From Pelomyxa schiedti (Eukaryota; Protista; Evosea): a stretch of 64,000 bases of DNA. Under the pieces are notes generated by a model that saw only the letters and a program-made list of their open reading frames with translations, had not been told where the DNA came from and did no database searches. The translations under genes and the position numbers were made by a program. Shown piece after piece: positions 1 to 60,798 of this stretch. Numbering within the stretch: the first letter of the stretch is position 1; the number at the start of each line of letters is the position of its first letter. The stretch covers positions 1-64,000 of the forward strand of contig JAHLWZ010000644.1 of NCBI GenBank assembly GCA_020536535.1, given 5' to 3'.

Positions 1-648
1 CGTTAATGGACAAATACAGAAGAAATAGAAACCTCAGTTCCTTGTTCATGCCTTGAACGGTCAAATGTGTCTCCAACACTTGATGTGATTTAGTATTAGT
101 CCATTTGGAAAGAAATCATCTATTACCTGTCTGATTCAATTGTGAAGTTTGTAGTATCCAAGGCTGTGATTTTTACTTTTTTGCAAATAAACCCCTCTGT
201 GGAAAACAAAAAAAACCACTCGTCCAAGAATGTATACAAAAGATTTTCTAAGTCATGACCTGTATTAAAAACATAAGAGTACGGAACCGAAAATTTCAAG
301 CCAGGACACTGTTCTTACAATTGAGTTATTTAGCCTGTAAAACTCCCCACACCTGAAACCGCAACGTGGTTTGTTTGAGTTTCTTGCACAGAATCGTTAA
401 GCGGAGTCATGTAATTCATAACACCACAGCACGCCCCTTCGAACGCCGCAGCCAAATTAGGACCCCATCCATGCACAATCACATCAGCTGGGTGGTCCAT
501 GTCTTGTTTGTTGAATCCCCAACCAGAAAAGCCACAAGGAGGAAAAACGGAAGGAATAAATGAGTTTTGGTGCCAGGGGTGAAGTCAAAAAAGAGAAAAA
601 ATGTGGGTGCCGCTTTCTGTAGGACACACATTCGAATTGCCCTGCCAT
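1..648 (-). CDS. Archease (RtcB tRNA-ligase cofactor), copy A; last exon lies outside the window
   Basis: Spliced translation MAGQFEY|MDHPADVIVHGWGPNLAAAFEGACCGVMNYMT...|GHDLENLLYTFLDEW...|VGDTFDRSRHEQGTE matches archease motifs (DH[T/P]AD, LL..FL.E, H..GTE). Confidence 0.9.
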
Positions 649-784
649 TTATTTGAACGACGAAACAATCCATCAGAAGGAAAAATTCAAATGAGCTGAA
701 CACGGAATAAATCAAACTGATATTGTTTGAACCGCGGGGTGGTAAGTGGTGAGAGTGCATTCGCAATGCCGAACGAAGTATGCA

Positions 785-1683
785 CTAGAGATGACGAATC
801 CATCGGGCAACTTTATCCTGCTGAGACTTTCCAGTCGTGGTTGCAGTGGTGTTTTGGAGTGATTCAATGTCATTTCGGACTTCCTGAACATGTTCTGCTG
901 TCAGTATGGGCTTCCTCTCACCCTTTCTTTGTCTTCTTCTCCATGCAGTCAGGCACATTCTAGCAAACACTGAAATAACGGCGCCAGTGGCTACCCACTG
1001 AATGGCAAGGCACACAATGGTCATAATGTGGAGTAAATCCTTGGAACAAGGGAATAAAATCTGTAGGCTAACTTGAATGAGGAAATGGATTACGTGAACC
1101 CAGAACTCACACTGTCCCAGCCATCATGTTGAAGAATTCCACTGCCATGCCCAAGTTGCATATGAGGGAATATTTAGTTATCCATGAAATAAAGGATTAA
1201 CCTACACGTTAGGGCCCAAATTACAAGGATAATAACCAGCCTTCCCTATACATTGGGAAACACCCGCAGTTAGTTCGATCTAGATATTATACATTTACCT
1301 CAAACAAAAGAGTAACTACAACTACAACGAAGCTATATGTACAAGCCACTATTTCGATGATGCCATAAATACACGTCTAGACCATGAGGTAAGCGACCAG
1401 TAATTTCGTATTTAATCCCTGTCCTCCTTTTCATGTTTTCGATTTATAAGCAGCTACAAACTGGGCACGCGAATCCATCGTCCATCTCCACACCAAAAAA
1501 CATAGCGTTGGTGAAGCTGCAAAGGAGAAGCGGAGCCCAGACAACAAAAGCAACAGGAAGCGCGAGGCACGCTTCTTGGCACAAAAAACAGTGGCAACCA
1601 GAGCACCGACCACAACACCCGCGAGTTTCACCCCACCGCCTCCTCCCACAAAATTTGGTCCTGTAGGCTGCGGGCATGTGCAT
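785..1683 (-). CDS. Small multi-pass membrane protein with Cys-rich N-terminus, copy A
   Basis: Five exons with GT-AG boundaries conserved in copy B: GCCGRCSGCHCFLC, TCIYGIIEIVACTYSFVVVV, GRLVIILVIWAL, LEFFNMMAGT, IVCLAIQWVATGAVISVF. Start codon uncertain. Confidence 0.65.
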
Positions 1684-1786
1684 TGAATTCGTGGATGCGT
1701 GCGCCCGAGATGTCTCAGAGTCCCAAATCAAATTGTGAAAAGGCATTCTACCGGCAAAAACGAAATAGTTGTCGCCTAAAAGATTG

Positions 1787-2558
1787 ATGAAGAAGAGGGG
1801 AGGGACACCGGTGGTGCCCAAGAGCACAACAAAAAGAATAACGCTGGCCAAACAAGGGTTGGAAGAAATACCTGGTGTGTGCAAAGTGTTTAGCCACTTT
1901 TTTTTCTTTTGTTTCATTTCTCATGTTGGAATGAAGTGGACCTCATCAGAGAACGATGTCCTGACGTTGTTGAGTTGGACTTAACTGACAACAACCTGGG
2001 CGAAATAATGGAGTGTCGGTTCTTTCCCACTCTGCAACTCCTTGTATTGGATGGCAATCACATTTCCTCTGACACTCAATTCCCGTTTCTACCGAAACTC
2101 GATGTACTACCCCTATCTTTACTTTCGTTTTCGAGTTTTACCTCCTCCCTTAATGGCTTTGAGTAATTAACCTTTTTTTCTTTCGTTTCCTTTGCATGCA
2201 ACACAACAACACCAAAGTCACAGACATGCAGACACTCTGGGTAAACAAAAACGAAATTACCAACCTAGCTCTATTTCTTGACAAAATTACATTGAGTACT
2301 CCCAACCTGAAGCATCTATCCATGCTCAAAAATCCAGTACTTTCCAACACCCGAATTCCCTCCCAATTTCGTTTTCCGTTTCGTTCTCCTTTTTTTTCCC
2401 TTCCCCTTTTTCCCCCTAATTCTACACCAAAGGCGTGCCCAAGTTGTTTCAATGGGGGTACTGTTGTTTTATATCAAGATTACAGATATTACACCCTCAG
2501 TCGACTGCCGCACCTCCTCAGTCTCGACAACTCCCCAATCTCTGAGGAGGAGCGCCGG
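1787..2558 (+). CDS. LRMDA/C10orf11-like leucine-rich repeat protein, copy A (truncated by gap)
   Basis: LDLTDNNL, LVLDGNHI, LWVNKNEI, LSMLKNP|ACP and an LRRcap (YRYYTLSRLPHLLSLDNSPISEEER). Confidence 0.8.
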
Positions 2559-2658
2559 NNNNNNNNNNNNNNNNNNNNNNNNNNNNNNNNNNNNNNNNNN
2601 NNNNNNNNNNNNNNNNNNNNNNNNNNNNNNNNNNNNNNNNNNNNNNNNNNNNNNNNNN
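2559..2658. other. Assembly gap (100 N)
   Basis: N run. Confidence 1.
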
Positions 2659-3116
2659 TTGTATGACCTGATGAACAACAAGTGAGAAATGAACAGACAG
2701 TAAGGACGTACATGACACCGGCGGTCCCCTTCATGGCCAAATGACGCTTGGAGAACAGCATCGGTGCACCTTTGTTGGTGGGGCATTCACCAGGAGGTTC
2801 CTCCAGAACTTTGCCCTAATGCGTTTGAGTTTCTATAAACTGGTAAATAGGAAGGTGACACACCGACTGAATGTAGTAATCAGGTTCAGAAAGGGTCTCC
2901 TGCAAGTAGTTGTCGATTCCTTGATAATTTGGTGAGGGAGTTACTATTAAGTCAAGAAATAGAGAGACTGTTAGTTGGCACACCAATAGCACAGCACCGT
3001 TTCTCCTTACAATCACGTGCCCACTCCTCAATCTTTGCCTGGAGAGGGTCTCCTGCACCCACTGTGTCTGCCATCTTGTGAACTGCTGCTGCGGCCGCGG
3101 AAGATAAGCTTTGCAT
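2659..3116 (-). CDS. Hypothetical protein, 3' end in gap
   Basis: Spliceable exons MQSLSSAAAAAVHKMADTVG...KEKR, TPSPNYQGIDNYLQETLSEPDYYIQS and GKVLEEPPGECP; no family recognised. Confidence 0.45.
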
Positions 3117-3423
3117 TGTCTTGGGGAGTATGTAGAGGTATTGTATTGGATGTCTCTGGATTTTTTCCTTGTCTACGTACTGAGAGCCAGCAACGCTTAT
3201 ATAGACCATGCGCAGGGAATTACTGTCACCGGACTTGACATGTCACGCAAAATTTCCTTCATTGCCTGTACACAAATCCTCGAAAACACGAGCAGGCCAC
3301 CAGCGTCACTCAATACGAAAAATCAACAATAGGTAAAAACAAGGGTTCCCCGAAACCATCAACAACATAAAAAAACAAGAACCGAAGAGGCGTGACGCTT
3401 AGGCGGACGATACAACAATTTAG

Positions 3424-4441
3424 ATGTCTACGTACCCAAATATTTCTGGTGCCATGAGGCACACCGAAGACAACAAGGTACCTTTTTTCTTTTTTTGTCA
3501 GGGAAATTAACCTCGGGTTTTTAGTTCAGGGGAAGATGGGCGCCACAAATCGCGACCCCAAAACCAAAGGTTGTGACCAAAATTATGGGTGGTATTAAGT
3601 AGGTAATTCTTTTTATTAGTTCTATGTGATAGCCCAACCAGCAAAGCCTGCTACCAAAACACCAGCCCCAGTAGCAGCTGCTCCCCCTCCAAAGGGTTTT
3701 TTCCTATATTCTCTCAGCTCATTTGTAATGTTTTGGGTTTGTTTTTACAGTCACCAAGCCAACTGTTCCTGCTCCAAGTGATGCTAAGTTTGTTCCCATG
3801 CTATTTTTTGGGCACTAATAGTTCTTACATTGTGTATAGGTTCACGATCATTGACAGAATGAAGAATTTCCGTAGTTACATGACTGAGGATGGTGCTTGT
3901 TACAACTCAGTTGGGGATGTACTAGGCTACATTGAGCAGTCCTCCTGGGAAGCTGGTTCAGCGTGTGTTTCTAGATTACATTTTATAACTTGAATAAATG
4001 TTAGTATTGAAGTGATGGGAAATTCCTTGGACGACTTCGTGATGACAACTTTGTTGAGAATGCTGTAGAAGTTGTTGTTGGTTGTGTGGACCTTGGTCGT
4101 GCATTGGTACCAAACACTGCTTTTGTTATTCCCAGCCCCCTCACCAAATAAAACAGATACGCGATGACCAAGATACAATTGTATGTGAAATGACAGGTAC
4201 GGGAGAGGTGTATGGTCACCAGGGATCCTACATTGGAGCATTTGACAACTTTGACTACCATCACATGAAGGTTTGTCCTCACAAATTTCCAAATATCCAT
4301 TTTCTGTGTCCCTAACCCTCAAACTACAAAAGATCATTACTCTCTACTTGTTACTTATTGACCCAGGTATGCTATCCACTTACCAACCAGCCCCATTTAA
4401 CGAAAATTCTCCAAGGCATGCTCAGCGAAATTGAAGGCTGA
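3424..4441 (+). CDS. Hypothetical multi-exon protein (Pro/Ala-rich N-terminus, small beta-rich C-terminal domain)
   Basis: About 8 exons splice in frame: MSTYPNISG..., FTIIDRMKNFRSYMTEDGACYNSVGDVLGYI, DGKFLGRL, GSYIGAFDNFDYHHMK|IITLYLLLIDPG. Confidence 0.7.
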
Positions 4442-47770: not shown

Positions 47771-49287
47771 ATGCCCAAGGCAAAGAGGGGAACCACGAGG
47801 AGGGAGCCTCCCACCAAGGCTGCAAATGCAAACAGACACGGATCCCATAAGGACGGTTGTGGGTCGTGCTGTTGCTGTTGTTGCGGGGCGAAGGGCTGTG
47901 CGTTGGTGTGCTTGGTGCTGGGGGTTGCGGCGGCTGCAGGGGCGGCGTGGCTCGTGAGGATGTCGGCTCCTTTGGAGCTGGACCTGGCCCCGTGCGGGGA
48001 CTGGGCGGCAAAATCGGGGGCGAGGCTACAGCTGGATGATGGGAGGAATCTATCTTACAGGGTTTATGGTGTGCCCTGCCCGGCGGGAGCCAATTGTGGG
48101 AGGGAAGCTGCTTGGTGCAGTCACATGTCTTCTTATTTTTTACTTTTAGTTCGAAGTCATGATTTGATGCTTAATTTAGTGTAATTTTTAGCCTGTATAT
48201 TGGTATTAAAATCTGAGTTAAATTAATATGATTTCCACCATAATAGGTTCTGGAGAACACGTTGTTTTCTACCTCCACCCTGACCCACAGTCTAGTGGGT
48301 GGGTTCATCCAAATATAGAAGATTTCTGCCGTGAAACTAACACTCGCATCCTGGCACTTGATCGACCTGGAGTAGGCCTCTCATCCCCACAACCCCGGCG
48401 CAATTTCCCCGACTATGCAGATGGTGTGTAACAATTTTCAGTAACTGCAACCTCACAGTAATTAATAAAGATGTCATTCAGTTGGTGACACACCTCGGCA
48501 TTACAAACTTCTCTGTAATTGGGCACAGTGCTGGAACTCCACACGCTCTTGCACTTGGAGCTGACCCGCGAGTAAAATCGCTTGGTATGTTTCTTTACAG
48601 AGATACCGTGGACTAAGTTCTTTAAGGTCTGCAACAAATTGCCTTGATTGGTCCCATATATCCCCCAAAGGAATTTAACAGCGGAACTTTGGAGGGAATG
48701 TCTAAAACGAACATCCTTGTCACTAAGCTAGCGAGGCGTTTCCCTTATGCTATCAAGCTTTATCTGTGTGTAACACGTTTCATGGGTTCCCTCTCGTAAC
48801 GGAGTTTAGTTCCTTGGTTCCTATAATGGCGAGACTGCTAGGAACAGAAACTACAATCAAGCTCCTTCTTTCTGAAAGCCCCAGAGACGTTTCTCTTGCA
48901 TTATCCTCGTACGTCAACCACCAAAACAACAAACAAAAACAACAAACAACCCACTAATTACACCTAAACAACAAAACAACCAGGCCTGAATGGATGCAAA
49001 GATTCGAGTGTTCGCTGGTAGAACACTTCGCGCAAGGATTCGCGCCGGCCGCACACGAATTCTACAGAATCGCCGAAGTGGACTGGCACTTTTCTCCCGC
49101 CAACGTGCAAGTACCCCTGGATTGCTGGGTGGGCTCAGACGACACCCTGACACCCAGTTTCATGGCCCATACCATATGCGAAATGGTCCCAATGTGCCGA
49201 GGAGTGCATGTCATTGACGGCGAGGGCCACTATAGCATCTACGCCAATCACTTGGAAGCAATTCTAAAGGGCCTGTTTGGGCATTGA
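47771..49287 (+). CDS. Membrane-anchored alpha/beta hydrolase
   Basis: N-terminal TM; LDDGRNLSYRVYG, LALDRPGVGLS, GHSAG nucleophile, WVGSDDTL, DGEGHYS. Confidence 0.9.
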
Positions 49288-49472
49288 GCGTCCCTCTCAC
49301 CTGTATCTCTTCTGCTATTTTCGCCATTTGAACAGCCGTAAAATGGTGCGTTTAACTTCGATGAATTTGTGCGGAAATGAAATGTGACCTTCTGAGAAAA
49401 TTACGTAATTAATCAGACCGAGACGCAACGGCAACAACAATAATAGGAATTCAAAACCAATAAAAAAACGAG

Positions 49473-52400
49473 ATGGCGAGATGTGCGGAGGTGGGTTGCA
49501 TTGCTGCGGTGCAGAGATTCTGCACAAACGACGGTCCTGGATTACGCACTACCGTGTTTCTGAAAGTATGGGGTTTTTTTACTGTTTCTTTCGCACCGTT
49601 TTTTGCTCTTGACTCGCGTGATCTCATCGAAAAATATATAGGGGTGTAATATGCGATGCGGGTGGTGTTGTAACCCAGAGTGCCTGAGTTCAGTTGTTCA
49701 ACAACGAATGGGAGAAACTACTGTTGGGTTTTATCAAACCGCTCAACAACTAGCGAGCCAACTTGTGCGTGATAAAGCATTCTGGAGCTATTCCTATGTT
49801 CCTTCTTCTGCGCCGCAACCAGTTTCAACAGCAGCAACGGCAATGCAACCAGTGGACCAGATTAATGGAATGCTTGGTAATCCCAGTTCCGAGGAAGTTG
49901 CTCGAGTACCCTCACGTGGAGGGGTAACCATTACTGGAGGAGAACCACTACTGCAATCTCAGTTTGTTTTGCACCTGGTCCGTGAGTTGAAAGCTCAAGG
50001 AATTCATGTTGCAATGGAGTCAAACGCTTCTCTAATTGCTCGTTCCGTCACCGCGAGGGAAGTCGTTAAAAGTCTGGACTACTGCATTGTTGATCTGAAA
50101 TGTGCTCATGAGTGCAAACATGAAGAAGTCACAGGAGTTGCTTTGGCTGATGTTAGGGAAGGAGTGGCAGTGGCAGCAAGTGAATGCCGTGATGTGCTTG
50201 TAAGAACTCCAGTAATCCCAGGAGTTAATAACACTTCTGAAGATATCGAATCACTAGCCAACTTGGTTGCATCACTTCCTTCTCGAGGTACCTTTTTTCT
50301 TGATACTATTTTTGTAAAACTTGTTGTCACTGATTCCTTGAAGTATCTTGGGAGTTGCTCCCTTATCACAACCGTGCAAAGGGGAAATACAGTTCCCTTG
50401 GTATACCCTACCTGCTGGGAAATCTTTCCCCTCTTTCACAGAAGGATTTAGCTCCACTTTCTGCTATTGCACAATACATCGCACCACCTCCAGATTTCGC
50501 ACCATCATTACCCAGCCCTCCTCAACAAATTTGCATCACTGGAGAACAAACCCACCGTAGTGCACGGACTGATACAATGTTGCGCGAACTATTAAATCTC
50601 CGTCCGAGTGTATCACATCATCGAGCCCAAGTTCTCACTGAATTTTTCCAAGATCTGGAGCATCAATCAATTCCAACACCAATATCCTATCCTCCCATTT
50701 CTCCAACCAATCCGACTACTATTAATGCCTCCAAGTCACCGGCCTTGGCTGTTGCTTTGGCATTCAAAAAGCTGTGTGAAGAAATTCCCGTGGGAATTCA
50801 TAGTAATGACCTCCTTGTGGGAGAGCGTGGAAAAGGCGGAGCTCCAAAAGTAGTTCCTACATACCCCGAGCTTCATGCGCACACAGCAGCAGAACTAAGG
50901 GAGCTAATATCAAGGAGTGTGCAGAAATTCGATGTTTCTGAGGACTGCGCTGCCCTTTTTGATCAACAAATCCACCCAAGCTGGCACGGAAAAACTGTTA
51001 CTGAAAACCTTATTTTTGCCAACCAATCTGAGTATAAAAACTATCTTACCTGTGGGGGTTTCACACAAGTATGTTTTGCAGCCAGTTAACACTTATCCAC
51101 TAAGACTCTGTCGTGTAGTTCATCGACTTCTTCCAGCCTTATACTGTCAACATGGATGATAGATTATACAGATTTGGTCTTGGGGGTGTTATTTCTGAGA
51201 TTCAGAAGCAGATTTTGCACCTACAATCCAACAAAACCTCTGCCGAAAGACCTGATTGCACAGAAGAATTCTATTCATTGTCCGCCATGTTAATCTCCTG
51301 CACTGCATTGATTAGCCTTGCCCATCGCTACGCTTCCTGTGCATTGCAGTTAGCTTCACAATGTGAGCAACCAGAAAGAAGAAATGAGCTCCAACAAATT
51401 GCACATGTATGCAATAGGGTTCCAGAGAATCCCCCAAGCACCTTGTGGGAAGCTATCCAATTTTATTGGTTTTTGCATATGGGGACTACACTAGAGAGCA
51501 ACAGTGATGCCCTTGGTCCTGGTTTTATTGACAGATACCTGGCACCCTTTTATTTTAGTGATGTATACGAAAAAAAGACCATCACCCATCAGTTCGCCCG
51601 TGAGCTATTAGAGGGTCTGGTATTAAAGTTGTATGCCCACTACACTACCCCAACAACGCTGGGAGAGAATGCTACATATGTCTATTTCTCTAATTTGCAA
51701 TTGGGCGGTGACAACCCAAATGAACTAAGTGCTATTTTTCTTGACATTTTAGACGACCTTCATCTATTTCAGCCACTGAGCCAGGCACTTACTCTGTAAC
51801 CTAAAATTTGGTTGTTAATACGCAAATAGGTTTTCATCTCTCAAAAAACACCAGATTGGTTTCTTCACCGAGCATGCCGTGCGATTCGACACGGAACTGG
51901 TTACCCGGCAGGTAGGAAACTTTCCATGGAGTTGTTTTTTTTTTCATCCCCCTATAGTATTCAACTTGGACAGTATCCGATCCCAGCTTCGCAATCACGG
52001 TTGCAGCTCAGAGGATGCTATGTCCAATGGGGGTGTTGTTGGCTGTGTTGAAACAATATGTGTTGGAAAGGAGTGCTTATTTACCGTCGGATACTTGAAT
52101 GCCACCAAGCCACTGGAACTTGCCCTAAACAACGGTTAGTACAATATTCCCGAAAACGTTTTCACTCTTTCAGGAGTTGACCCCTTGACCGGGCAATCTG
52201 TTGGCCCAGCAACGGGAGATCCTACAAAATTTACCTCACTCCAAGATGTCCTTGACGCCTATGTAGCACAGTTCAGGAACATGGTGAGAGTCAAGGTTGC
52301 GGGAGATTTTGATATCGAAACTCAAGCTGCCCGGAGATGGCCAACACCTTTCCGATCTGTTATAATAGACGGATGTGTTGAAAATCACGCACTGCTAGAA

Positions 52401-53333
52401 TTTGGCGGCGCCAAGTACAACTCCTCAGCCATTGCAGTATTCCACTCCCTCAATTTTTTTCCATTTTAACTAGCGTCCAAGGTTTCGTGCTTCGGAAGTA
52501 CTGTTGATAGCCTTGTGGCACTGGATCAAGTTGTATTTTCCAAGAAATTACTCCCCATGTCAGCAGTGTTGGAAGCACTCCGCAGCGACTTTGCTGGATG
52601 TGACAATTCCGTACACACACTCCTCAGTTCCCAGCCTAAATGGGGAAATGACTGTGACACAGCCGACAACATAGCCATTCAACTAGAGAGACTTCTTCGA
52701 GGAGAGATTGATGGTCGCAAAAACTTCAGGGGAGGTGTTTACAGAGCTGAATTTTTGAGTGTCACGGCTCACATTTCTTTTGGCAGTTCTACTGGGGCAA
52801 CACCAAATGGTGTGTGGTGTTGTCACACGAATTGTATTTTCACACTGCTTAGGCCGAAAAGCTCGTACACCACTTTCTGAAGGTCTTTCGGCCTCACAAG
52901 GCCAAGACAAGAACAGTCCCACTGCATTACTTCTCTCTGCTTCAAAGCTCGACCATACAGTTTCCAAGGGTAACTTACTGAATGTAAAGTTCTTGCCGGA
53001 CCTCCTAGCTGGCGCTGTACGAAATTCTGGTGTTTTTCGGTAATTTAACGATTTATCAGAGGGGAGAACTTGCATTGGCAGCACTATTGCGAGGTTATTT
53101 TTCGCTTGGAGGCCACGAACTTCAGTGCAACGTTGTCTCTGGTCACACTTTGCGGTGAGATTACTCTTTTAGTGTACTTCATAACAGTTCTTTCTAACAG
53201 GGATGCACAACTCAACCCTGACAAGTACCGAGACTTGATTGTGCGGGTGGCTGGATACAGTGACTTGTTTGTAGAACTGACCAAAGACATTCAAGACGAC
53301 ATCATAGCACGAACGGAACACGGCTCGGAGTAA
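49473..53333 (+). CDS. Fused glycyl-radical activating enzyme (radical SAM) + glycyl radical enzyme (HypD/PFL2-like), about 1,100 aa
   Basis: Activase: [18 protein letters not shown]|[41 protein letters not shown]...KY. Exon 50344-51068 continues without a stop into the GRE (LLVGERG...TYPE); then [15 protein letters not shown]|[20 protein letters not shown] and [15 protein letters not shown]...RTEH*. Confidence 0.92.
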
Positions 53334-53464
53334 TCGCTACTGTAGAATTGTGAATATGTTCATATATCCTCACATGCCTCTCAAGACTATGTGTGTACAG
53401 ATGTTTGTTTTTTTGGAATAAAGTTTCTCGTTACCACAGTTTATCTTTTATCACATTTTTGAGT

Positions 53465-54867
53465 TTAGAACTTTGTCTTGGGTTGTACCAACACAAACAG
53501 TGGCTGAATTTGAGTAACCATTTTATGCACAACACAAGCAGGAAGGTCCAAAACTTCCAGGTTGCTGTCCTCAGTACTGTAGGTGATTGAATACCAGTGT
53601 GTTGATAACTGTGTGAGGCCACTCGCGTACTGCCTTTTTCCTGTCTGGTTGGACAGGAGAAAAGTGCCACTGGCCCCTGTGATTCTATAGAATAAAGAGA
53701 ATGAGCCAAGAAAGGGTATGAAGGAATGGAAGGAAGAAACCGAAAAGGGTGTGTCTTTTCGAAGGTGTAGAGGAAGTAGATGTATTGGCTAGGTGTGGTT
53801 ATGTGCCCAAGAGCTAAAAAGTCCTCCCCCCGCTCGACTGCCACAGAACTTCCCCGTAAATGGGCGTCTACTTTAATTTCAGATTACAAAAGAAGGAAAT
53901 CGGACTACCTGGATATCCTAAGAGAATAGGAAGAGTGAGCCACGTGCTCTGAGAAACAACTTCACACATTCCACCATGTTCACATGAAACTATCGTGTGC
54001 GGCTCAATAGACTGGGCAAACACGGGTCGCGCGGCTCCAGGTGGCAGGAATGCAACCCAATTTTTTTCTACCTGTGGTCCACTGACGTTCACGGGCGGGT
54101 GTAGAAAAGTGATGTCAGAAACACTAAGGGTTTCAAAATCTACAGTGATTGTCACCATCCTTCTCAGGCATTTCTCCGTCAATGCGTTGGCCATGATCAT
54201 AACTGCAGTGGCACCTACAATCATCATCCAAGAAGCCAAAGTTATATAGGGTTTCTTTATTTTACCTGGAAGAATCAATGGACGTGGGTCCTCAAATCCA
54301 AGACCTCTGTTGCCACAAGCTGACCAATTGGGCTCATAAGGTGTTGTAATTATTGTTGTACTTTCAGAACCATCCATGAAAAAAGGGGGTGTCACTTGAA
54401 AACGTGACATTAATGCAGTACTACAGTGCAGTGAGGAGAAAGAATACCGAATTCATCAATAGAATATCTCTTAGCAGCTATTAAACTCGTTCCAGTGTCC
54501 CATTGAGCCACCCTGTAGAACATAAGCCATATCCTGGATCCCAGCAAACTCGGTGGCCAGACAGCAATACTTGGATTGAATTCATCACTTTCCACTCTCC
54601 TATTCCTATTCCCTACAAATATGCCATGTAAAATACTCGTTTTGCATAATAATGATCCGAAAAAAGGACAAAATGAAAACGAAAGAAAAAAACAAAACAA
54701 TAAAAAAAAAACCCACCTCAACCTTGCACAATTTCGTGGGACCAACGTTGTTTGGAGCACGAGATGGTTTGGTTGCTATTCCTGTTCAAACAAATCCACG
54801 TGAATGTAACAGACACCACGGTCGCCAGCACCAGCCAAATCACTTTGTTCTGTGGCGACCCTCCCAT
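53465..54867 (-). CDS. Type II membrane beta-propeller glycan-active protein (GH130 / beta-mannosyltransferase-like)
   Basis: N-terminal TM VIWLVLATVVSVTFTWIC; FNPSIA, GFEDPRPL, VEKNWVAF, GSSVAV...FLALGH, QYASGL...ITYSTED. Confidence 0.65.
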
Positions 54868-55241
54868 TATCTCCTGTGGCGCACTTGTCCCCGGCAGCTA
54901 CAAAAAAACCCCAGCGCCCAACTGGCACGTCAGTCTAGTGGTTCGAATCGGCTGCGGAGGTTTTCTTTTTTGTCAGTTGTGGCCAACAGACTTGCCTTCA
55001 TCAGACCCCAAGGGTACTGAATTGAATTTTTTCGTGTCAAGGAGGGGAGTTCCAGGCATCAAAAATCAGTCCACTGTGGAATTGGATTCAATCACGTGGA
55101 GGTGCACCCCACACTTTTCACCAATAGATCATCACGTTCACCATATGCCTCCTCCGTCTCCTCCCCAGCCGCTCACATCCCCCAATATCCGCTTATGGGA
55201 ATGGTAAAAACTGAAGAACGGACTGACTTTTTTGCAAATTA

Positions 55242-55619
55242 ATGACATCCCCCACATCAGCACCTTCACCTCTCCCATCATCGGCTCCTCCGCCTCCCCC
55301 GCCATCGTCATCAGCAGAAGCAACGGCGGCGGCCGCCGTGGCTGTGCCCGTGGTGGTGGTGGACAGGGGCGCTCAGCTCGAGCGGGCCGTGATGCAGTCC
55401 CACATCGTGTGGTCGATGCTGCTGCCGCGGTGGCTGCCGTGCTGCAGGCCAACCACGTGCCCCGTGGGCTTCACCACGTGGAGGTACGACCGGTCCACGA
55501 TGTTCGACGACGACTCGCTCACCACCAATATCACTCTGTCTGAGGGATTTGATATGCTCACGGTTGTAGCAGAGGCAATGTTTCCTCTGTACGTATTTTC
55601 CCTTCTATCTCGTATGCCG
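55242..55619 (+). CDS. Hypothetical protein, 5' fragment running into gap
   Basis: GC-rich ORF MTSPTSAPSPLP...QSHIVWSMLLPRW..., with an intron donor before the gap. Confidence 0.5.
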
Positions 55620-55719
55620 NNNNNNNNNNNNNNNNNNNNNNNNNNNNNNNNNNNNNNNNNNNNNNNNNNNNNNNNNNNNNNNNNNNNNNNNNNNNNNNNN
55701 NNNNNNNNNNNNNNNNNNN
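55620..55719. other. Assembly gap (100 N)
   Basis: N run. Confidence 1.
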
Positions 55720-56023
55720 TCAGGCAAAGAATACTTTGAGAATAACTTCCAAAGCACACTCACAAAAGCAGCACTGCAGTCAGCATCAGTGGTGATGCCA
55801 CAACCATTAACAAAAACACGGTCAACCAAAGAAGAAATTCAACAGGGACAACCAAATTCCTCCACAACCACGGTTTCGGGACCTATAACGGCCGCACCAA
55901 TAGCACTCACGTCTTCCTTGGATACCCCACCAACGCCACCATTACTCCCGTTAAGACCACTATCGCTTGCACCAAAACTGGATTCTGATGCTGTTTCTGC
56001 CACCGCTGCTACCACAAGAACAC
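55720..56023 (+). repeat. Near-identical copy of 21515-21821 (linker of the LRR-SAM-caspase gene)
   Basis: tcaggcaaagaatactttgag...accacaagaacac; differs by a 3-nt indel and a few substitutions. Confidence 0.95.
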
Positions 56024-56346
56024 CCTAACTCCAAAAATTTCCCAATTTGCGCGTCAAATCGGAACCAAAGTGAGCCTCCAAATTGCTTAACTAGTGCACA
56101 CTTTGGACAAAGTGGAGGGATTTCAAAGTGGCACCGCTTTGAGCATTCTCAAATCGGGCACAAATTGGGGATTTTCCCAGGTTGCCTACAAATTGGAAGA
56201 TACATAATTTATTTTTTTTTTCCCTTACTTACACCTGCATGGTTGCGTGGTTGCTAGCTGGTGGTCCAGTAACAGAGAGGCTGTCACGGTTGTACTCTTC
56301 AAAATAATTAAAATAAAATAAGATATGCGGAAAGAACAAACCTGCA

Positions 56347-56808
56347 GGCAGACTCTCTTGCTCTTTGGCAAGGGGCAAAGGTGCGTACATCAAATAATTG
56401 TCATGTGAACCTGTGTGGATGTTAGAAGCAGAAAGCCAATAAAAAGGACAAACCAAGTTTGCTGCCAACTAGCGGAAGTCTTGAACATAACAGCAGCTTG
56501 TCAATCTGTGCCTTGGTTAAGGTGGGGGAAAAAAAAGGGAGGAAGGACATACCGGAGTCGGCAACCGGGACCCAGGCAGACTCTCTTGCTCTTTGCAAGG
56601 GACAAAGGCGCATTATTTGATCAAATAATGGTCGCCTGTTGTCATGTGAACCTGTGTGGATGTTAGAAACAGAAAGTCAATAAATGGGACAAAACCAGCA
56701 AACTCGCTGAAGTCATGAACTTAACAGCAGCTTGTTACAAAATCTATGCATTGGTTAGCTGGGAGAAAAAAAAGAGAGAAGGCCATACCAGAATCGGCAA
56801 CTGGAATC
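56347..56808. repeat. Diverged tandem duplication, two units of about 228 bp
   Basis: Units start ggcagactctcttgctcttt at 56347 and 56575; both contain gtcatgtgaacctgtgtggatgttagaa. Confidence 0.85.
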
Positions 56809-57818
56809 CTTTAGCTGTTCCGCACTGGCTTGTCAGGTTAGTCGGAAAGAGAGAAGTAAGTTGAGGGCACACCCAAGAGGAGAGCCGCCAAAAAGGAAAG
56901 TAGCCTGGAAGCTTGGTGGAACTGCCGATCCAATTCAACCAAGCAAGTTAACGGGAAAAGGGAAAAAGGGGGAAAAGGGAAAAAAGGGAAACGCACCACA
57001 CTGCGATCAGCTATAAAGGGTGTGGAACATGCAGAGGGGAGGGAGCGTAGCGACACCGATGCGCGGCCGGCTACGCACTACGCTTGGTTTTTTTGTTGTT
57101 TTGTTTTTCGCGATTCTCCGAAGAAGCCTCCGCACATGCGGACTCCTCAAGCTGAGAAAAACCCAAGGTGGCTCAGCCACCATTGCGATGTGCAGTGGTG
57201 ACTAAGTACGGTGAGCGCACTCTGGGACACGCCATGAATTCGGTTGTCCTCTGGCGTTTGTGGATTGCACAGTGGATGGCTGATGTTATCATTGGAGGCC
57301 CCTCTTGTCAAATTCTAGTGACATTACCTGTGATGCACAGTAAGGTGTTGGCCTAGATAATAGCAAATAGCATCTTTGTCACTTCACCTGCACATCAAAC
57401 TACTACTGTATATGTCCAAATACAAAGGGAGATGTTGGGACAGTAGTGTTGAACCTAACTTTTCTCAGCCAGTAATAGTGGGCATTGCGACCACCCTAAG
57501 GAGAAGCACAAATATCACAGGTGGTTTCTTACCTCTACAGCAAGATAATCAATGAAGCAGTTAGTGCATAATGATTTACACTACACTTGGGTACCAATAG
57601 CACAAAGAAAGGCTTATGTAAATGAAAAAAGGATTGTAATTCAACTGCATAAAATAACCTCACCTAACACCAAATTACACCAGCCAAGGTATTATAAGTA
57701 CCATACAAAAGAAAAACCTTTTTCTATTCTCCTTCTATTGCGAATAAACTTATAAACAAAAGAAAGAAGGTGATAACAACCCGGCTAGCTCAGCGGTGCA
57801 ATTGCAAAATTCGCATCG

Positions 57819-59790
57819 GTGAAAGTCCGCTCCGACATGTCGGCAAGTGTTGACGCTCCCCACGCGTGCGCGGTTGCCCACACAACAACAACGGCAACAA
57901 ACAACAAGTCCAACGGATCAGCGGCATCAGCGTCTTCATCGCTTGCGAAGGAGGTGCCGGTGTCGTCGGGAAGACCGCAAAGGCGTGTCCCCCCTCCGTC
58001 GACATCGCACACAAGCGCGCAAACCCCACGGACATCGTCACTCGACGGTGGCGACGTTCCTGCGGAGGTGACGCGTTTCATCAGCGAGTGCAGAAATCTC
58101 TGCAGCAACGCAACAAACAAGGAATCCACTACCTCTGCTCAGGCTCTGCTTGAGAGGATCGGCATCATCTTCAACCAGTACTCACACATCAAGAGCCACC
58201 ATCCCACCTTCAAAGATGTGGTGAAGCCTTTGGTGTTGGAGGTGGACGGTCTGCGCCGTTCTGCTCGCCAACAAGTAGCGTCACCCATCGTCAACCCAAC
58301 ACCAATCCCGGCATCTCCAGCAAAGGAAGTTCCGCTCCCCAATGACGACGCACCACTAACTCCTCGCAATGAGCAACAACAGGACCCTTTCACTCCTTCG
58401 GGAGATGAACCTAAGGGTCCCACTACCTCGACGATTACCAATACTTCCACATCTTCTACACCAGACCACACCCCTCTCATGCCAACCATACCATCAGTAT
58501 TGGTTACAATGAGGAGGGGTAGGAAAACAGCACAACCTCTTCCGAAAATCCCTGGGCAAACCCTAGAAGGGATATTAAGGAATGGAATCCATCGAACTCC
58601 AAACCCATACATTCACCTCATTGCTCACCCACCACCTGGGCTCCTTGGAGACTACCTTAGCTCCATTTGGGCTAAGTTAGTGATAGCCATTGAGCAGACC
58701 CTGCAAAAGAAAATCCAATCCCTGAGCTATCTGAACGGGAAGTATCGTCTCAACTTCCTCCCTACACAAACACCGGCAGACAAATCAATCTCGGTACTGG
58801 TAGAAGGGTACCGATATGATTTTGCAACAACAACAAAGACCCTGCGGGCCATTAACCCAGGTCTTAATCCCAAACTCACCTACGAGTAGCAGCCAATGGG
58901 ACATCCCATTCTACACCATTTCCTCTGAAGGCTCAGTCCTCCTCCTTACAGATAGGATACACTTTACCCCGACTGCACCACAAGAAAAAGGAAAGATCAC
59001 GTGGCGAATCCTTGGATACCACATGTGCGATAGATGTGGTGCCCAAAACCACGATGTCAATCTTTGCCCTTTCACCTCAGCTGAACAGCGCATGCAGCTG
59101 GCTGCCTCGTCGAAGCAGAGAAGCCGCCGCCAAAGGAAGCGACGCCGCCCTCCACTGACCACTATTAAACCTCCTGACCATGACTAGTCTAAAGGTTTTA
59201 ACGTGGAATGTGAGGGGGCTAGCAGCAGCAACACACCAAAAACTCACCAACATAACAAAACTCATAAACATCCTCAACCCACACATCATCATACTCACAG
59301 AGACCCACTCCACCGAAACAGCAAATTACAATATCAGCCAGATAAACCGCAAGTTCTGGTGGTTTACCAGCGGACACTCCACCTCAGATGGAGTAGCGAT
59401 TGGAGTAAACCCATCACTCAACCCCAACAACCAAGTCTCTTTGATATCGGGACGTTTGGCAAAGGTTCAAGTAACCTGGAACAATACACCCTTGGAAATA
59501 CTAGGAGTGTATGCTCCCTACGTTGGACACACAGATGCCTTGGACTTCTGGCACCCAAACCAGAATGGGTTTTTCGAGGGCAGACTCATTGACAATAATA
59601 TCACTTCAATATCCAACCTCTTTTATGGAGCAAGGAGCAAAAGAATGCCTATTCAATTCCTCTTCACCAACTTCTCCAAGGCATATGATAATCTGGATAG
59701 GGATGCAATTATCCAGATTCTCCAGCACATTGAGATGACACCCAAATGGGTAAATGTCATCCAACACCTCATGCAAACCACGGAGGCTTA
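57819..59790 (+). mobile_element. Degenerate non-LTR retrotransposon (L1/Tx1-like): ORF1 with CCHC knuckle, ORF2 with APE and RT fragments
   Basis: CDRCGAQNHDVNLC (CX2CX4HX4C); ORF2 LKVLTWNVRGL, IIILTETH, LGVYAP, then directly QNGFFEGRLIDNNI...TNFSKAYDNLDR; ORF1 stop overlaps the ORF2 ATG (catgactag). Confidence 0.9.
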
Positions 59791-59890
59791 NNNNNNNNNN
59801 NNNNNNNNNNNNNNNNNNNNNNNNNNNNNNNNNNNNNNNNNNNNNNNNNNNNNNNNNNNNNNNNNNNNNNNNNNNNNNNNNNNNNNNNNN
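59791..59890. other. Assembly gap (100 N)
   Basis: N run. Confidence 1.
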
Positions 59891-60798
59891 CCCTTACCTC
59901 TCCCAAGGTTGTGCTGGAACAGGGAAATCTTTACTTCTCCGAAGAATTGTTGACCTACTGAAATCTACGGACTGCAGAGTAGCAGTGACAGCACTTACAG
60001 GTTCGTTTTGCTACTTTAATAATGCGCCTTTCTAATCCTTCATGCCTTCCCGTCAGGAATTGCGGCAGTCAACATTGGAGGTGTTACTCTTCATCACTGG
60101 GCGGGTTCACCTGGCTGTGTTAGACAGCATCATCTGCAGCTCATCTTGCGGGTGCCTGGGCAAGGAGGGATAACTGGGAAAATGCAGATGTTCTCATAAT
60201 AGACGAAGTGTGCCCAGCTTTTTTTCAAGGATTACTTGTTACCTTACTCACATTATACAGGTATCTATGCTGGATGCAGCACTTTTTCACAGATTGGATG
60301 CTATTGGTCGTAATATCCGAAACGATCTCTGATTTGATTGGAAAAAAAAAGGGACAAGGAGTTCCCAAGAATGAAAGTGTTGATGGCCATTATGCACAAG
60401 GTGGTTTCTTGCCAACAAGAATGCATACATTCCCCTCGTGAAATTCGATGGTATGGACAGACTGAGTGGGTAACCTCGCTGATGGTCAACCTTCTCTGAA
60501 ACTTGCTTGGGCCATTTCTATTCATAAAAGCCAAGGCATGACACTGGTTGTGATTGCTCAAACTGCCCATGCCCTTCGATTTTATGAGTTTCTGCACTCC
60601 AGACCAACTCCAGAAACAACACCAGGTCCCGTACAAACCACATCCACAAACTTCACAACTGTCACCACAAGTACAAAAAACGGAACCTCCGCCAAAGAAA
60701 TCCATCACACCAAAGGTCAAACAGTAAAAAAACCACTGCAACAACCACACAAACTCCCCTCTCAAGCACCCAAAAACACACACAACATACAAAACTAA
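59891..60798 (+). pseudogene. PIF1-family helicase fragment with frameshift and internal deletion
   Basis: GCAGTGKS, VAVTALT|GIAAVNIGGVTLHHWAG; frame change before WENADVLIIDE|VSMLD; jumps to LKLAWAISIHKSQGMTL. Confidence 0.8.

Follow-up and report, generated by a model that had tools for sequence, protein, structure and literature searches.

Can a eukaryote carry a glycyl radical enzyme (GRE) and its activase on one polypeptide chain, and if so, where would such a protein come from and what could it do? The question is raised by a gene at positions 49473-53333 of a 64,000-nucleotide (nt) stretch of Pelomyxa schiedti DNA (contig JAHLWZ010000644.1, positions 1 to 64,000), referred to below as the window. 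P. schiedti is an anaerobic free-living archamoeba (PMC8887013). We consider it probable that the locus is a genuine nuclear gene of this organism, encoding a single 1123-residue activase-GRE polypeptide that would derive from an operon, activate itself, and catalyze an elimination for which hydroxyproline (Hyp) is not the substrate.

Gene structure and domain layout

The gene model, assembled from pieces of open reading frames (ORFs) on the + strand and short introns within positions 49000-54000, comprises 11 exons and 10 introns, with a coding sequence (CDS) of 3372 nt; all parts of the gene described below lie on the + strand. The introns are 39-76 nt long, and nine of the ten are of the GT-AG type, the remaining one (51785-51829) being GC-AG. 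The gene structure and domain content are established, and the predicted protein consists of a complete activase (residues 1 to ~293), a Pro-rich linker, and a complete GRE of the CXE type (residues ~320-1123).

The activase half occupies the first two exons and the beginning of the third. Exon 1 (49473-49565) holds the start codon and the activase N-terminus with the DGPGLR motif (49530-49547), and is assigned by homology: position 4 of the activase hidden Markov model (HMM) aligns at residue 8, and the BLASTP alignment to an activase linked to the hydroxyproline dehydratase HypD begins at residue 7. Intron 1 (49566-49641; 76 nt, GT-AG), modeled from frame and homology, restores the frame between FLK and GCNMRCGWC. 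Exon 2 (49642-50287) encodes the radical S-adenosylmethionine (SAM) core, matched by the Pfam families Radical_SAM (3.5e-10) and Fer4_12 (3.1e-07), and includes the CX3CX2C motif CNMRCGWC (49645-49668), the GGEP motif (49936-49947), and the RTPVIPG motif (50203-50223). It is followed by intron 2 (50288-50343; 56 nt, GT-AG).

The two halves meet in exon 3 (50344-51068), which encodes the activase C-terminus with the LLPYH motif (50355-50369), the linker, and the GRE N-terminus, with residues 131-240 of the exon matching the PFL-like family of Pfam. The junction lies within an uninterrupted ORF of 244 residues (50355-51089). The Pro-rich linker, [13 protein letters not shown]..., is located at 50484-50561 and has a length of ~25-26 residues (residues 294-319 of the fusion); the match to the activase HMM stops at residue 290, and homology to GREs starts at about residue 320. 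The N-terminal region of the GRE contains, in addition, a Pro/Thr-rich low-complexity insertion (50670-50735) that does not align to HypD.

The remainder of the gene encodes the rest of the GRE. The PFL-like profile (PF02901) matches exons 3-8 in order, covering profile positions 41-647 of 647, and Gly_radical (PF01228) matches exons 9 and 11. The Cys loop GCVE (52041-52052) provides Cys767 and Glu769 of the CXE motif, aligned to Cys434 and Glu436 of HypD, and the glycyl radical motif RVAGYS (53244-53261; residues 1095-1100, with Gly1098), which falls in the Gly_radical domain, is aligned to RVAGYSD of HypD. The first-pass annotation had described a radical-SAM activase and a complete GRE in one frame, joined inside exon 3 with no stop, gap, or intron; all the motifs it named are found where it placed them, and its gene start, gene end, and junction exon coincide exactly with those of our model, which has one ORF and one mRNA.

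Transcripts and genomic reads across the junction

Four public sequencing runs of one sample, two of DNA (X1 and X2) and two of Smart-seq2 complementary DNA (cDNA; X3 and X4), were mapped onto positions 49400-53400. X1 is identical to the window across this whole stretch. X2, which is fragmentary, differs at three sites: a deletion of 6 nt precedes the ATG (49425), intron 1 has T>A at 49574, and exon 6 has a synonymous G>A (52031). These variants are allelic or cell-to-cell variation sparing the protein. Neither DNA run has a stop or a frameshift at the junction.

The junction is transcribed as one spliced RNA. A 696-nt cDNA contig (X4 record 11) maps to 50150-50285|50342-50901 with intron 2 removed, and begins in the activase before RTPVIPG, continues past LLPYH and across the Pro-rich linker, and ends 340 nt into the GRE. 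Of the exon for which the first-pass annotation suggested a transcript check (50344-51068), this contig covers the part up to 50901, and a junction-crossing mRNA is established, with no stop or frameshift. Further, a 1106-nt contig (X3 record 10) lacks introns 7, 8, 9, and 10 (52437-52481, 52810-52852, 53017-53059, and 53155-53200, respectively) exactly as modeled, and X4 record 12 confirms introns 9 and 10. At the loose end of X3 record 10, the Smart-seq2 template-switch oligo adjoins the final bases of exon 6, which fits removal of intron 6. The introns confirmed by cDNA contigs are therefore 2, 7, 8, 9, and 10. Introns 3-5 are supported by the continuity of the frame and of HypD homology at each junction, and the same splices are used by the public protein model, which covers the gene from residue 99. 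For instance, the GC-AG intron (intron 4; 45 nt) is the sole splice that preserves both the frame and the HypD spacing QP+3+V+x+I+3+TP, and it is spliced identically in the NCBI model. GC-AG introns account for 1.59% of introns in P. schiedti, which has 7.43 introns per gene (PMC8887013).

The ten spliceosomal introns, the host-like composition (46.7% GC in the CDS and 45.4% in the window), and the eukaryotic neighboring genes of the window, which encode LRR, VWA, and RING proteins and an NIF/NLI-type phosphatase and include an element resembling a long interspersed nuclear element (LINE), indicate a host-integrated eukaryotic gene and not bacterial contamination, as the first reading of the sequence had held.

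A second eukaryotic locus with the same junction

The search of 1.84 billion representative proteins with exon 3 returned one match at 100% identity, P0001, a protein of 1025 residues deposited in NCBI as "glycyl radical protein [Pelomyxa schiedti]" on an 81.9-kb contig and annotated with PF04055, PF02901, and PF01228. It equals our model from residue 99 to the end, the GC-AG splice included. The closest other relative, P0002, is 49% identical over the matched stretch of exon 3 and is encoded on L001, a 1071-nt Logan contig from run ERR12035211 with 40% GC. Hand-spliced, L001 yields an activase C-terminus (RTPIIP, ELLPFH, KYSALG), a shorter and dissimilar linker, and a GRE N-terminus, with no stop between them; the contig is a fragment and ends before the remainder of the gene. 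Its GT-AG introns (35 and 38 nt) are identical in position and phase to introns 2 and 3 of the P. schiedti gene. Because both the junction and the intron positions are shared, the fusion and introns 2 and 3 should be older than the divergence of two lineages, or of two paralogs. L001 is 39-43% identical to the P. schiedti fusion; the domains are conserved, and the linker and the Pro/Thr-rich insertion, which corresponds to a 23-residue gap in L001, are not. Such conservation of the domains with divergence of the linker is what one expects of a two-domain protein that is functional.

Among the other matches of exon 3, only three fragments, P0038, P0040, and P0050, combine the C-terminus of an activase with the N-terminus of a GRE. 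They were rejected as natural fusions because the reading frame is not maintained between the two domains. P0038 and P0040 are from long-read metagenome contigs (L089, 3001-4443, and L090, 1785-3152, respectively), in which the GRE is broken into several called genes, and all three look like indel artifacts. No natural bacterial activase-GRE fusion turned up in these searches. The search with the activase region among long proteins returned only the P. schiedti protein, which is a weak negative, as this search needs shared 5-residue words; the ESM Atlas returned only generic activase clusters (score 0.80) for residues 1-420, which is uninformative on fusions; and scans of JGI metagenomes with exon 3, or with an alignment of exon 3 and L001, gave no match.

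Is the fusion an artifact of bacterial contamination, of chimeric assembly, or of an indel merging adjacent genes? The P. schiedti genome was obtained from single cells of a polyxenic culture after whole-genome amplification (PMC8887013), and pseudo-fusions caused by frameshifts do exist in long-read metagenomes, P0038 and P0040 being examples. However, at least five of the ten spliceosomal introns are removed in cDNA, two DNA runs and one cDNA contig show an identical junction, the gene is flanked by eukaryotic genes, and both the junction and the intron positions recur in a second eukaryote. Since the DNA and cDNA runs and L001 agree on the junction, the artifact explanation is refuted as far as the data allow, and we regard it as extremely improbable.

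The glycyl radical enzyme half and its active site

The best relative of the GRE half in the PDB is HypD of Clostridioides difficile (6vxc, 546 bits), ahead of glycerol dehydratase (414), the choline trimethylamine-lyase CutC (323-352), 4-hydroxyphenylacetate decarboxylase (HPAD; 182 for 2y8n and 247 for 7e7l), and pyruvate formate-lyase (PFL; 109). In the alignment to 6vxc both the Cys loop and the Gly loop are intact, with Cys767 opposite HypD Cys434. The protein has the hallmarks of the GRE superfamily, RVAGYS in a Gly_radical domain and a PFL-like barrel with a Cys loop, and the CXE motif of GRE eliminases (GCVE).

Its score against the HypD family is low. NCBIfam scans were run on P0001, the N-terminally short form, with the bacterial proteins P0143 and P0069 for comparison. 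The HypD equivalog NF043068 gave 661.9 bits, below its cut-off of 1100 (1348.5 for P0143 and 1426.6 for P0069), and TIGR01774 (the PFL2-3 subfamily) gave 489.7, below its cut-off of 678.2 (719.9 for P0143). The model of the HPAD large subunit, NF033715, gave 243.9 bits (cut-off 1150), and the PFL model TIGR01255 gave 115.2 bits (cut-off 994.2), the Cys loop being GCVE and not CC.

The acid-base and substrate residues essential in HypD are His160, Asp278, Asp339, Ser334, Phe340, and Glu436, and single changes H160Q, S334A, and at Asp339 abolish the activity (PMC7077986). The pocket was compared in the alignment to 6vxc and by column counts over 119 bacterial homologs, Lys326 being taken from the pairwise alignment only. 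The amoeba GRE retains Phe152, Asp278 (51506-51508), Phe340, Cys434, Glu436, and Tyr450. The residue changes are established: Arg156 is replaced by Phe (51131-51133), His160 by Thr (51143-51145), Ser334 by Asn (51668-51670), Asp339 by Tyr (51683-51685), and Thr645 by Val, and Trp277 and Lys326 are deleted. The positions given with coordinates belong to exon 4 (51119-51784), which encodes the segment of the GRE barrel with the altered pocket. Six of the changed residues are invariant in 119/119 bacterial homologs, where all the counted HypD residues are kept. Most residues holding the Hyp carboxylate are gone from the amoeba GRE. Given the replacements at the positions where HypD handles the carboxylate and the amine, hydroxyproline is probably not its substrate. 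The segment [14 protein letters not shown], common to L001 and the P. schiedti GRE, covers the Phe and Thr replacements; the altered pocket thus appears to be conserved and not decaying.

These data also bear on the idea that the gene encodes a plain eukaryotic HypD fused to its activase and performing ordinary HypD chemistry. HypD is the top match in both the PDB (546 bits) and NCBIfam, the 119 closest homologs bear the full HypD signature, and Asp278, Phe340, Tyr450, Cys434, and Glu436 are retained. Yet the HypD equivalog is matched at 662 bits against a cut-off of 1100, with 1348 for the bacterial homolog, His160, Asp339, and Ser334 have been changed to Thr, Tyr, and Asn at positions essential in HypD (PMC7077986), and Arg156 and Thr645 are replaced by Phe and Val, with Trp277 and Lys326 deleted. 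Hence ordinary HypD activity seems quite unlikely, and the GRE half is better described as a putative sister of the HypD clade than as HypD.

The activase half

The activase HMM is matched over positions 4-291 of 301 with 224.7 bits. The motifs DGxGxR (D20-R25), CX3CX2C (C33/C37/C40), and GGE (G130-E132) are present, and 34 of the 41 highly conserved columns, defined as those conserved in ≥90% of 180 reference activases, are kept. None of the eight Cys columns of the two auxiliary clusters (two CX2CX2CX3C motifs), which hold Cys in 78-89% of the 180 references, is retained: a cysteine-free segment of exon 2 replaces the ferredoxin-like insert, whose cysteines ~85% of the reference set carries, and Pfam gives no Fer4 family match. 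Judging from the alignment, the activase has kept the radical-SAM core and lost the two auxiliary clusters that non-PFL activases typically carry. Such clusters are not needed by PFL activase. TIGR02494 gave 118.8 bits (cut-off 174.35) on P0001, which is missing the 98 N-terminal residues with strongly conserved motifs.

The activase half is 28-35% identical to many activase families. In three loci with the activases closest to the amoeba domain, a short GRE gene lies 3-15 nt downstream (L006, 2961-5102; L007, 4885-7026; L008, 4919-7105). The neighbors there are SusD, GH92, RhaT, sulfatase, or AraC genes, which suggest a role in sugar metabolism.

Gene order in prokaryotes and origin of the fusion

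Among the matches listed, the GRE half has ~120 homologs, with 38-43% identity and a length of ~787 residues, all prokaryotic and without a radical-SAM domain. Eighty HypD loci (L009-L088) were drawn from a collection of species-representative bacterial and archaeal genomes; they span Bacillota, Chloroflexota, Aminicenantes, Planctomycetota, Bathyarchaeia, Asgard archaea, and others. In 65 of the 80 loci an activase ORF is directly upstream on the same strand, in one it is downstream, and several others are cut at the contig end. This agrees with the general rule, invoked in the first-pass annotation, that GREs and activases are separate adjacent genes. The median distance from the activase stop to the GRE start is 3 nt, with values of ≤20 nt in 55 of the 65 loci and overlapping genes in eight.

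Since the activase sits directly upstream of the GRE with such a short gap, both the fusion and its domain order are readily explained: loss of the stop codon in an activase-GRE unit would give the same domain order and a short linker. On the sequence data, the simplest reading would be that a bacterial or archaeal two-gene unit of the HypD type was acquired and then fused.

Several observations accompany this survey. The loci L009-L088, in which a GRE with the HypD signature has an activase upstream, represent very many phyla, among them metagenome-assembled genomes of Bathyarchaeia, Thermoplasmatota, Theionarchaea, and Asgard archaea (Promethearchaeota). In two loci (L002 and L003), the neighbors of the HypD-type GRE are a proline racemase-family gene, an AcnX-type gene, and oligopeptide ABC transporter genes. 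Finally, P0020 (703 residues) combines 553 N-terminal residues that match HypD with 150 C-terminal residues that match the iron permease EfeU, and is probably a chimeric or frameshifted prediction.

Proposed mechanism and points against it

We suggest the following scenario. An ancestor would have acquired an activase-then-GRE unit of the hydroxyproline dehydratase type from a bacterium or archaeon; the gap of 1-5 nt and the activase stop codon would have been lost, leaving one reading frame, and the gene would then have gained about ten introns and a host-like composition. The fusion was probably selected for co-expression, as a monocistronic eukaryotic mRNA gives one protein. The N-terminal domain, with a single [4Fe-4S] cluster on CX3CX2C, would cleave SAM reductively, and the resulting 5'-deoxyadenosyl radical would take a hydrogen from Gly1098, either in the same chain or in the partner chain of the dimer. 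The radical would move to Cys767, which together with Glu769 would drive elimination on a substrate that is not hydroxyproline and that probably has no amino-acid carboxylate. The enzyme may thus switch itself on, and the mature product is predicted to be a single protein.

A number of observations weigh against parts of this scenario. As for the origin, the amoeba GRE groups in the maximum-likelihood tree as the sister of all 40 HypDs in the sample (SH-aLRT 98), on a branch of 3.3 substitutions per site against a median of 0.32, which makes the placement uncertain; this very long branch does not allow a donor to be named. The closest activases (33% identity) adjoin the different, shorter GRE (713-728 residues) and not HypD, and HypD-linked activases score slightly below the top matches (141 versus 159 bits). 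The activase half is about equally distant from many activase families, and so co-transfer of the two halves is plausible, not demonstrated. Of the earlier proposal that a two-gene operon was acquired and fused, the step from operon to fusion stands as the simplest reading, and joint arrival of both halves is not demonstrated. As for the 5' end, P0001 starts at Met99 and leaves out exon 1 and early exon 2, with DGPGLR and CX3CX2C, and the two cDNA runs contain no contigs over exon 1, intron 1, and introns 3-5, so that the 5' end rests on homology. As for the catalytic function, the missing auxiliary clusters and essential HypD residues might also be a sign of decay, although the conservation in L001 argues against it.

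The linker is the point at which a different outcome could arise. One mRNA might give two proteins, by proteolysis of the linker or by internal initiation, which would restore an ordinary two-protein system. The linker is Pro-rich, poorly conserved, and of a different length in L001, all of which tells against our scenario, and bacterial activases act catalytically as separate proteins. Still, there is no conserved Met-initiated GRE start at the junction, the frame through the linker has been kept in two lineages, and the linker is short (~25 residues). We therefore consider two separate products unlikely and prefer the single chain.

The truncated public model leads to another alternative, in which the activase is dead or vestigial: the protein would start at Met99 without CX3CX2C, and the GRE would be inactive or activated by another enzyme. 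The start of P0001, the lack of RNA contigs upstream of 50150 in exons 1-2, and the loss of all auxiliary-cluster cysteines could be read in this way. However, the frame upstream of Met99 is open, with intact DGPGLR and CX3CX2C and a canonical GT-AG intron, and the activase profile is matched from position 4; 34 of the 41 conserved columns are retained, the C-terminal motifs of the activase are conserved in L001, and auxiliary clusters are dispensable for PFL activase. A vestigial activase is, in our view, very unlikely, and we retain the reading of a functional one. The public protein model misses the 98 N-terminal residues, which bear the radical-SAM cluster motif.

Relation to known systems

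The nearest known system is HypD and its activating enzyme HypD-AE of C. difficile (6vxc; NF043068/NF043069), the GRE half having 38-43% identity to the 119 homologs. The two systems share the CXE Cys loop, the RVAGYSD Gly loop, Phe152, Asp278, Phe340, and Tyr450, and the activase-GRE order of the operon is the domain order in P. schiedti. HypD systems consist of two separate prokaryotic proteins, whereas the P. schiedti protein is one chain, predicted to be sister to the HypD clade, with an activase that lacks the two auxiliary [4Fe-4S] motifs and with His160, Asp339, Ser334, Arg156, Thr645, Trp277, and Lys326 replaced or deleted.

The first-pass annotation knew of no activase fusion for a non-PFL GRE. 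This claim of novelty does not hold in that form: Nyvltova and colleagues are said to have described in 2017 a "unique" fusion of a laterally acquired 4-hydroxyphenylacetate decarboxylase and its activase in the archamoeba Mastigamoeba balamuthi, interpreted as operon transfer, and NCBI already lists the P. schiedti protein, though only with a generic name. The GRE of the reported M. balamuthi fusion belongs to a different subfamily, the P. schiedti GRE reaching 244 bits against the HPAD cut-off of 1150 and HPAD being among its most distant relatives in the PDB. The P. schiedti gene would thus be a second type of activase-GRE fusion in Archamoebae, and the architecture is not categorically new.

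PFL and its activating enzyme (PFL-AE) have reportedly been found by Stairs and co-workers (2011) in Chlamydomonas, Neocallimastix, and other protists. As in the case considered here, a GRE and an activase were laterally acquired by (facultatively) anaerobic eukaryotes, and PFL-AE, too, has no auxiliary clusters. PFL differs in its CC Cys loop and its chemistry (115 bits for the P. schiedti GRE, cut-off 994), and to our knowledge the eukaryotic PFL and PFL-AE are encoded by separate genes. The long-form choline trimethylamine-lyase CutC (9f3w, 1150 residues) is an eliminase of similar length with an N-terminal extension of ~300 residues, which presumably is not a radical-SAM activase. It is the top PDB match for exon 4 alone, though over the whole length it is weaker than HypD (352 versus 546 bits).

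In the literature searched, no paper pairing Pelomyxa schiedti with "glycyl radical" was found. The word "radical" does not occur in the P. schiedti genome paper, and its supplementary table marks PFL as absent (PMC8887013). A 2026 review of the GRE superfamily contains neither "fusion" nor "fused," and fusions are apparently not discussed there.

GREs are hard to use outside bacteria, because the oxygen-sensitive activase that matches each one must be provided on its own. A natural single chain in at least two eukaryotes would be a test case for activation in cis or within a dimer and for the dispensability of auxiliary clusters, and a clean example of a eukaryote keeping two operon genes co-expressed after lateral transfer. 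P. schiedti has no PFL; the GRE, whose pocket is unlike that of any characterized family, points to an unrecognized anaerobic pathway in the amoeba. More tentatively, and short of what we would call probable, the gene and L001 might represent a eukaryote-specific clade of self-activating, single-chain GREs with an activase devoid of auxiliary clusters, a conserved rewritten pocket, and an elimination chemistry not directed at Hyp; together with the HPAD-type fusion reported in Mastigamoeba, this would mean that archamoebae repeatedly fuse such operons. If true, such a clade would amount to new GRE chemistry in amoebae.

Other features of the gene and the window

The remaining exons of the model are exons 5-8 (51830-51911, 51958-52134, 52174-52436, and 52482-52809) and exons 9-11 (52853-53016, 53060-53154, and 53201-53333). 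The window contains three 100-N scaffold gaps, within 1-4000, 54001-56000, and 56001-60000, none of them inside the gene. Finally, an ORF at 59180-59953, which encodes an Exo_endo_phos domain and weakly matches reverse transcriptase, looks like a fragment of a LINE-type retroelement.

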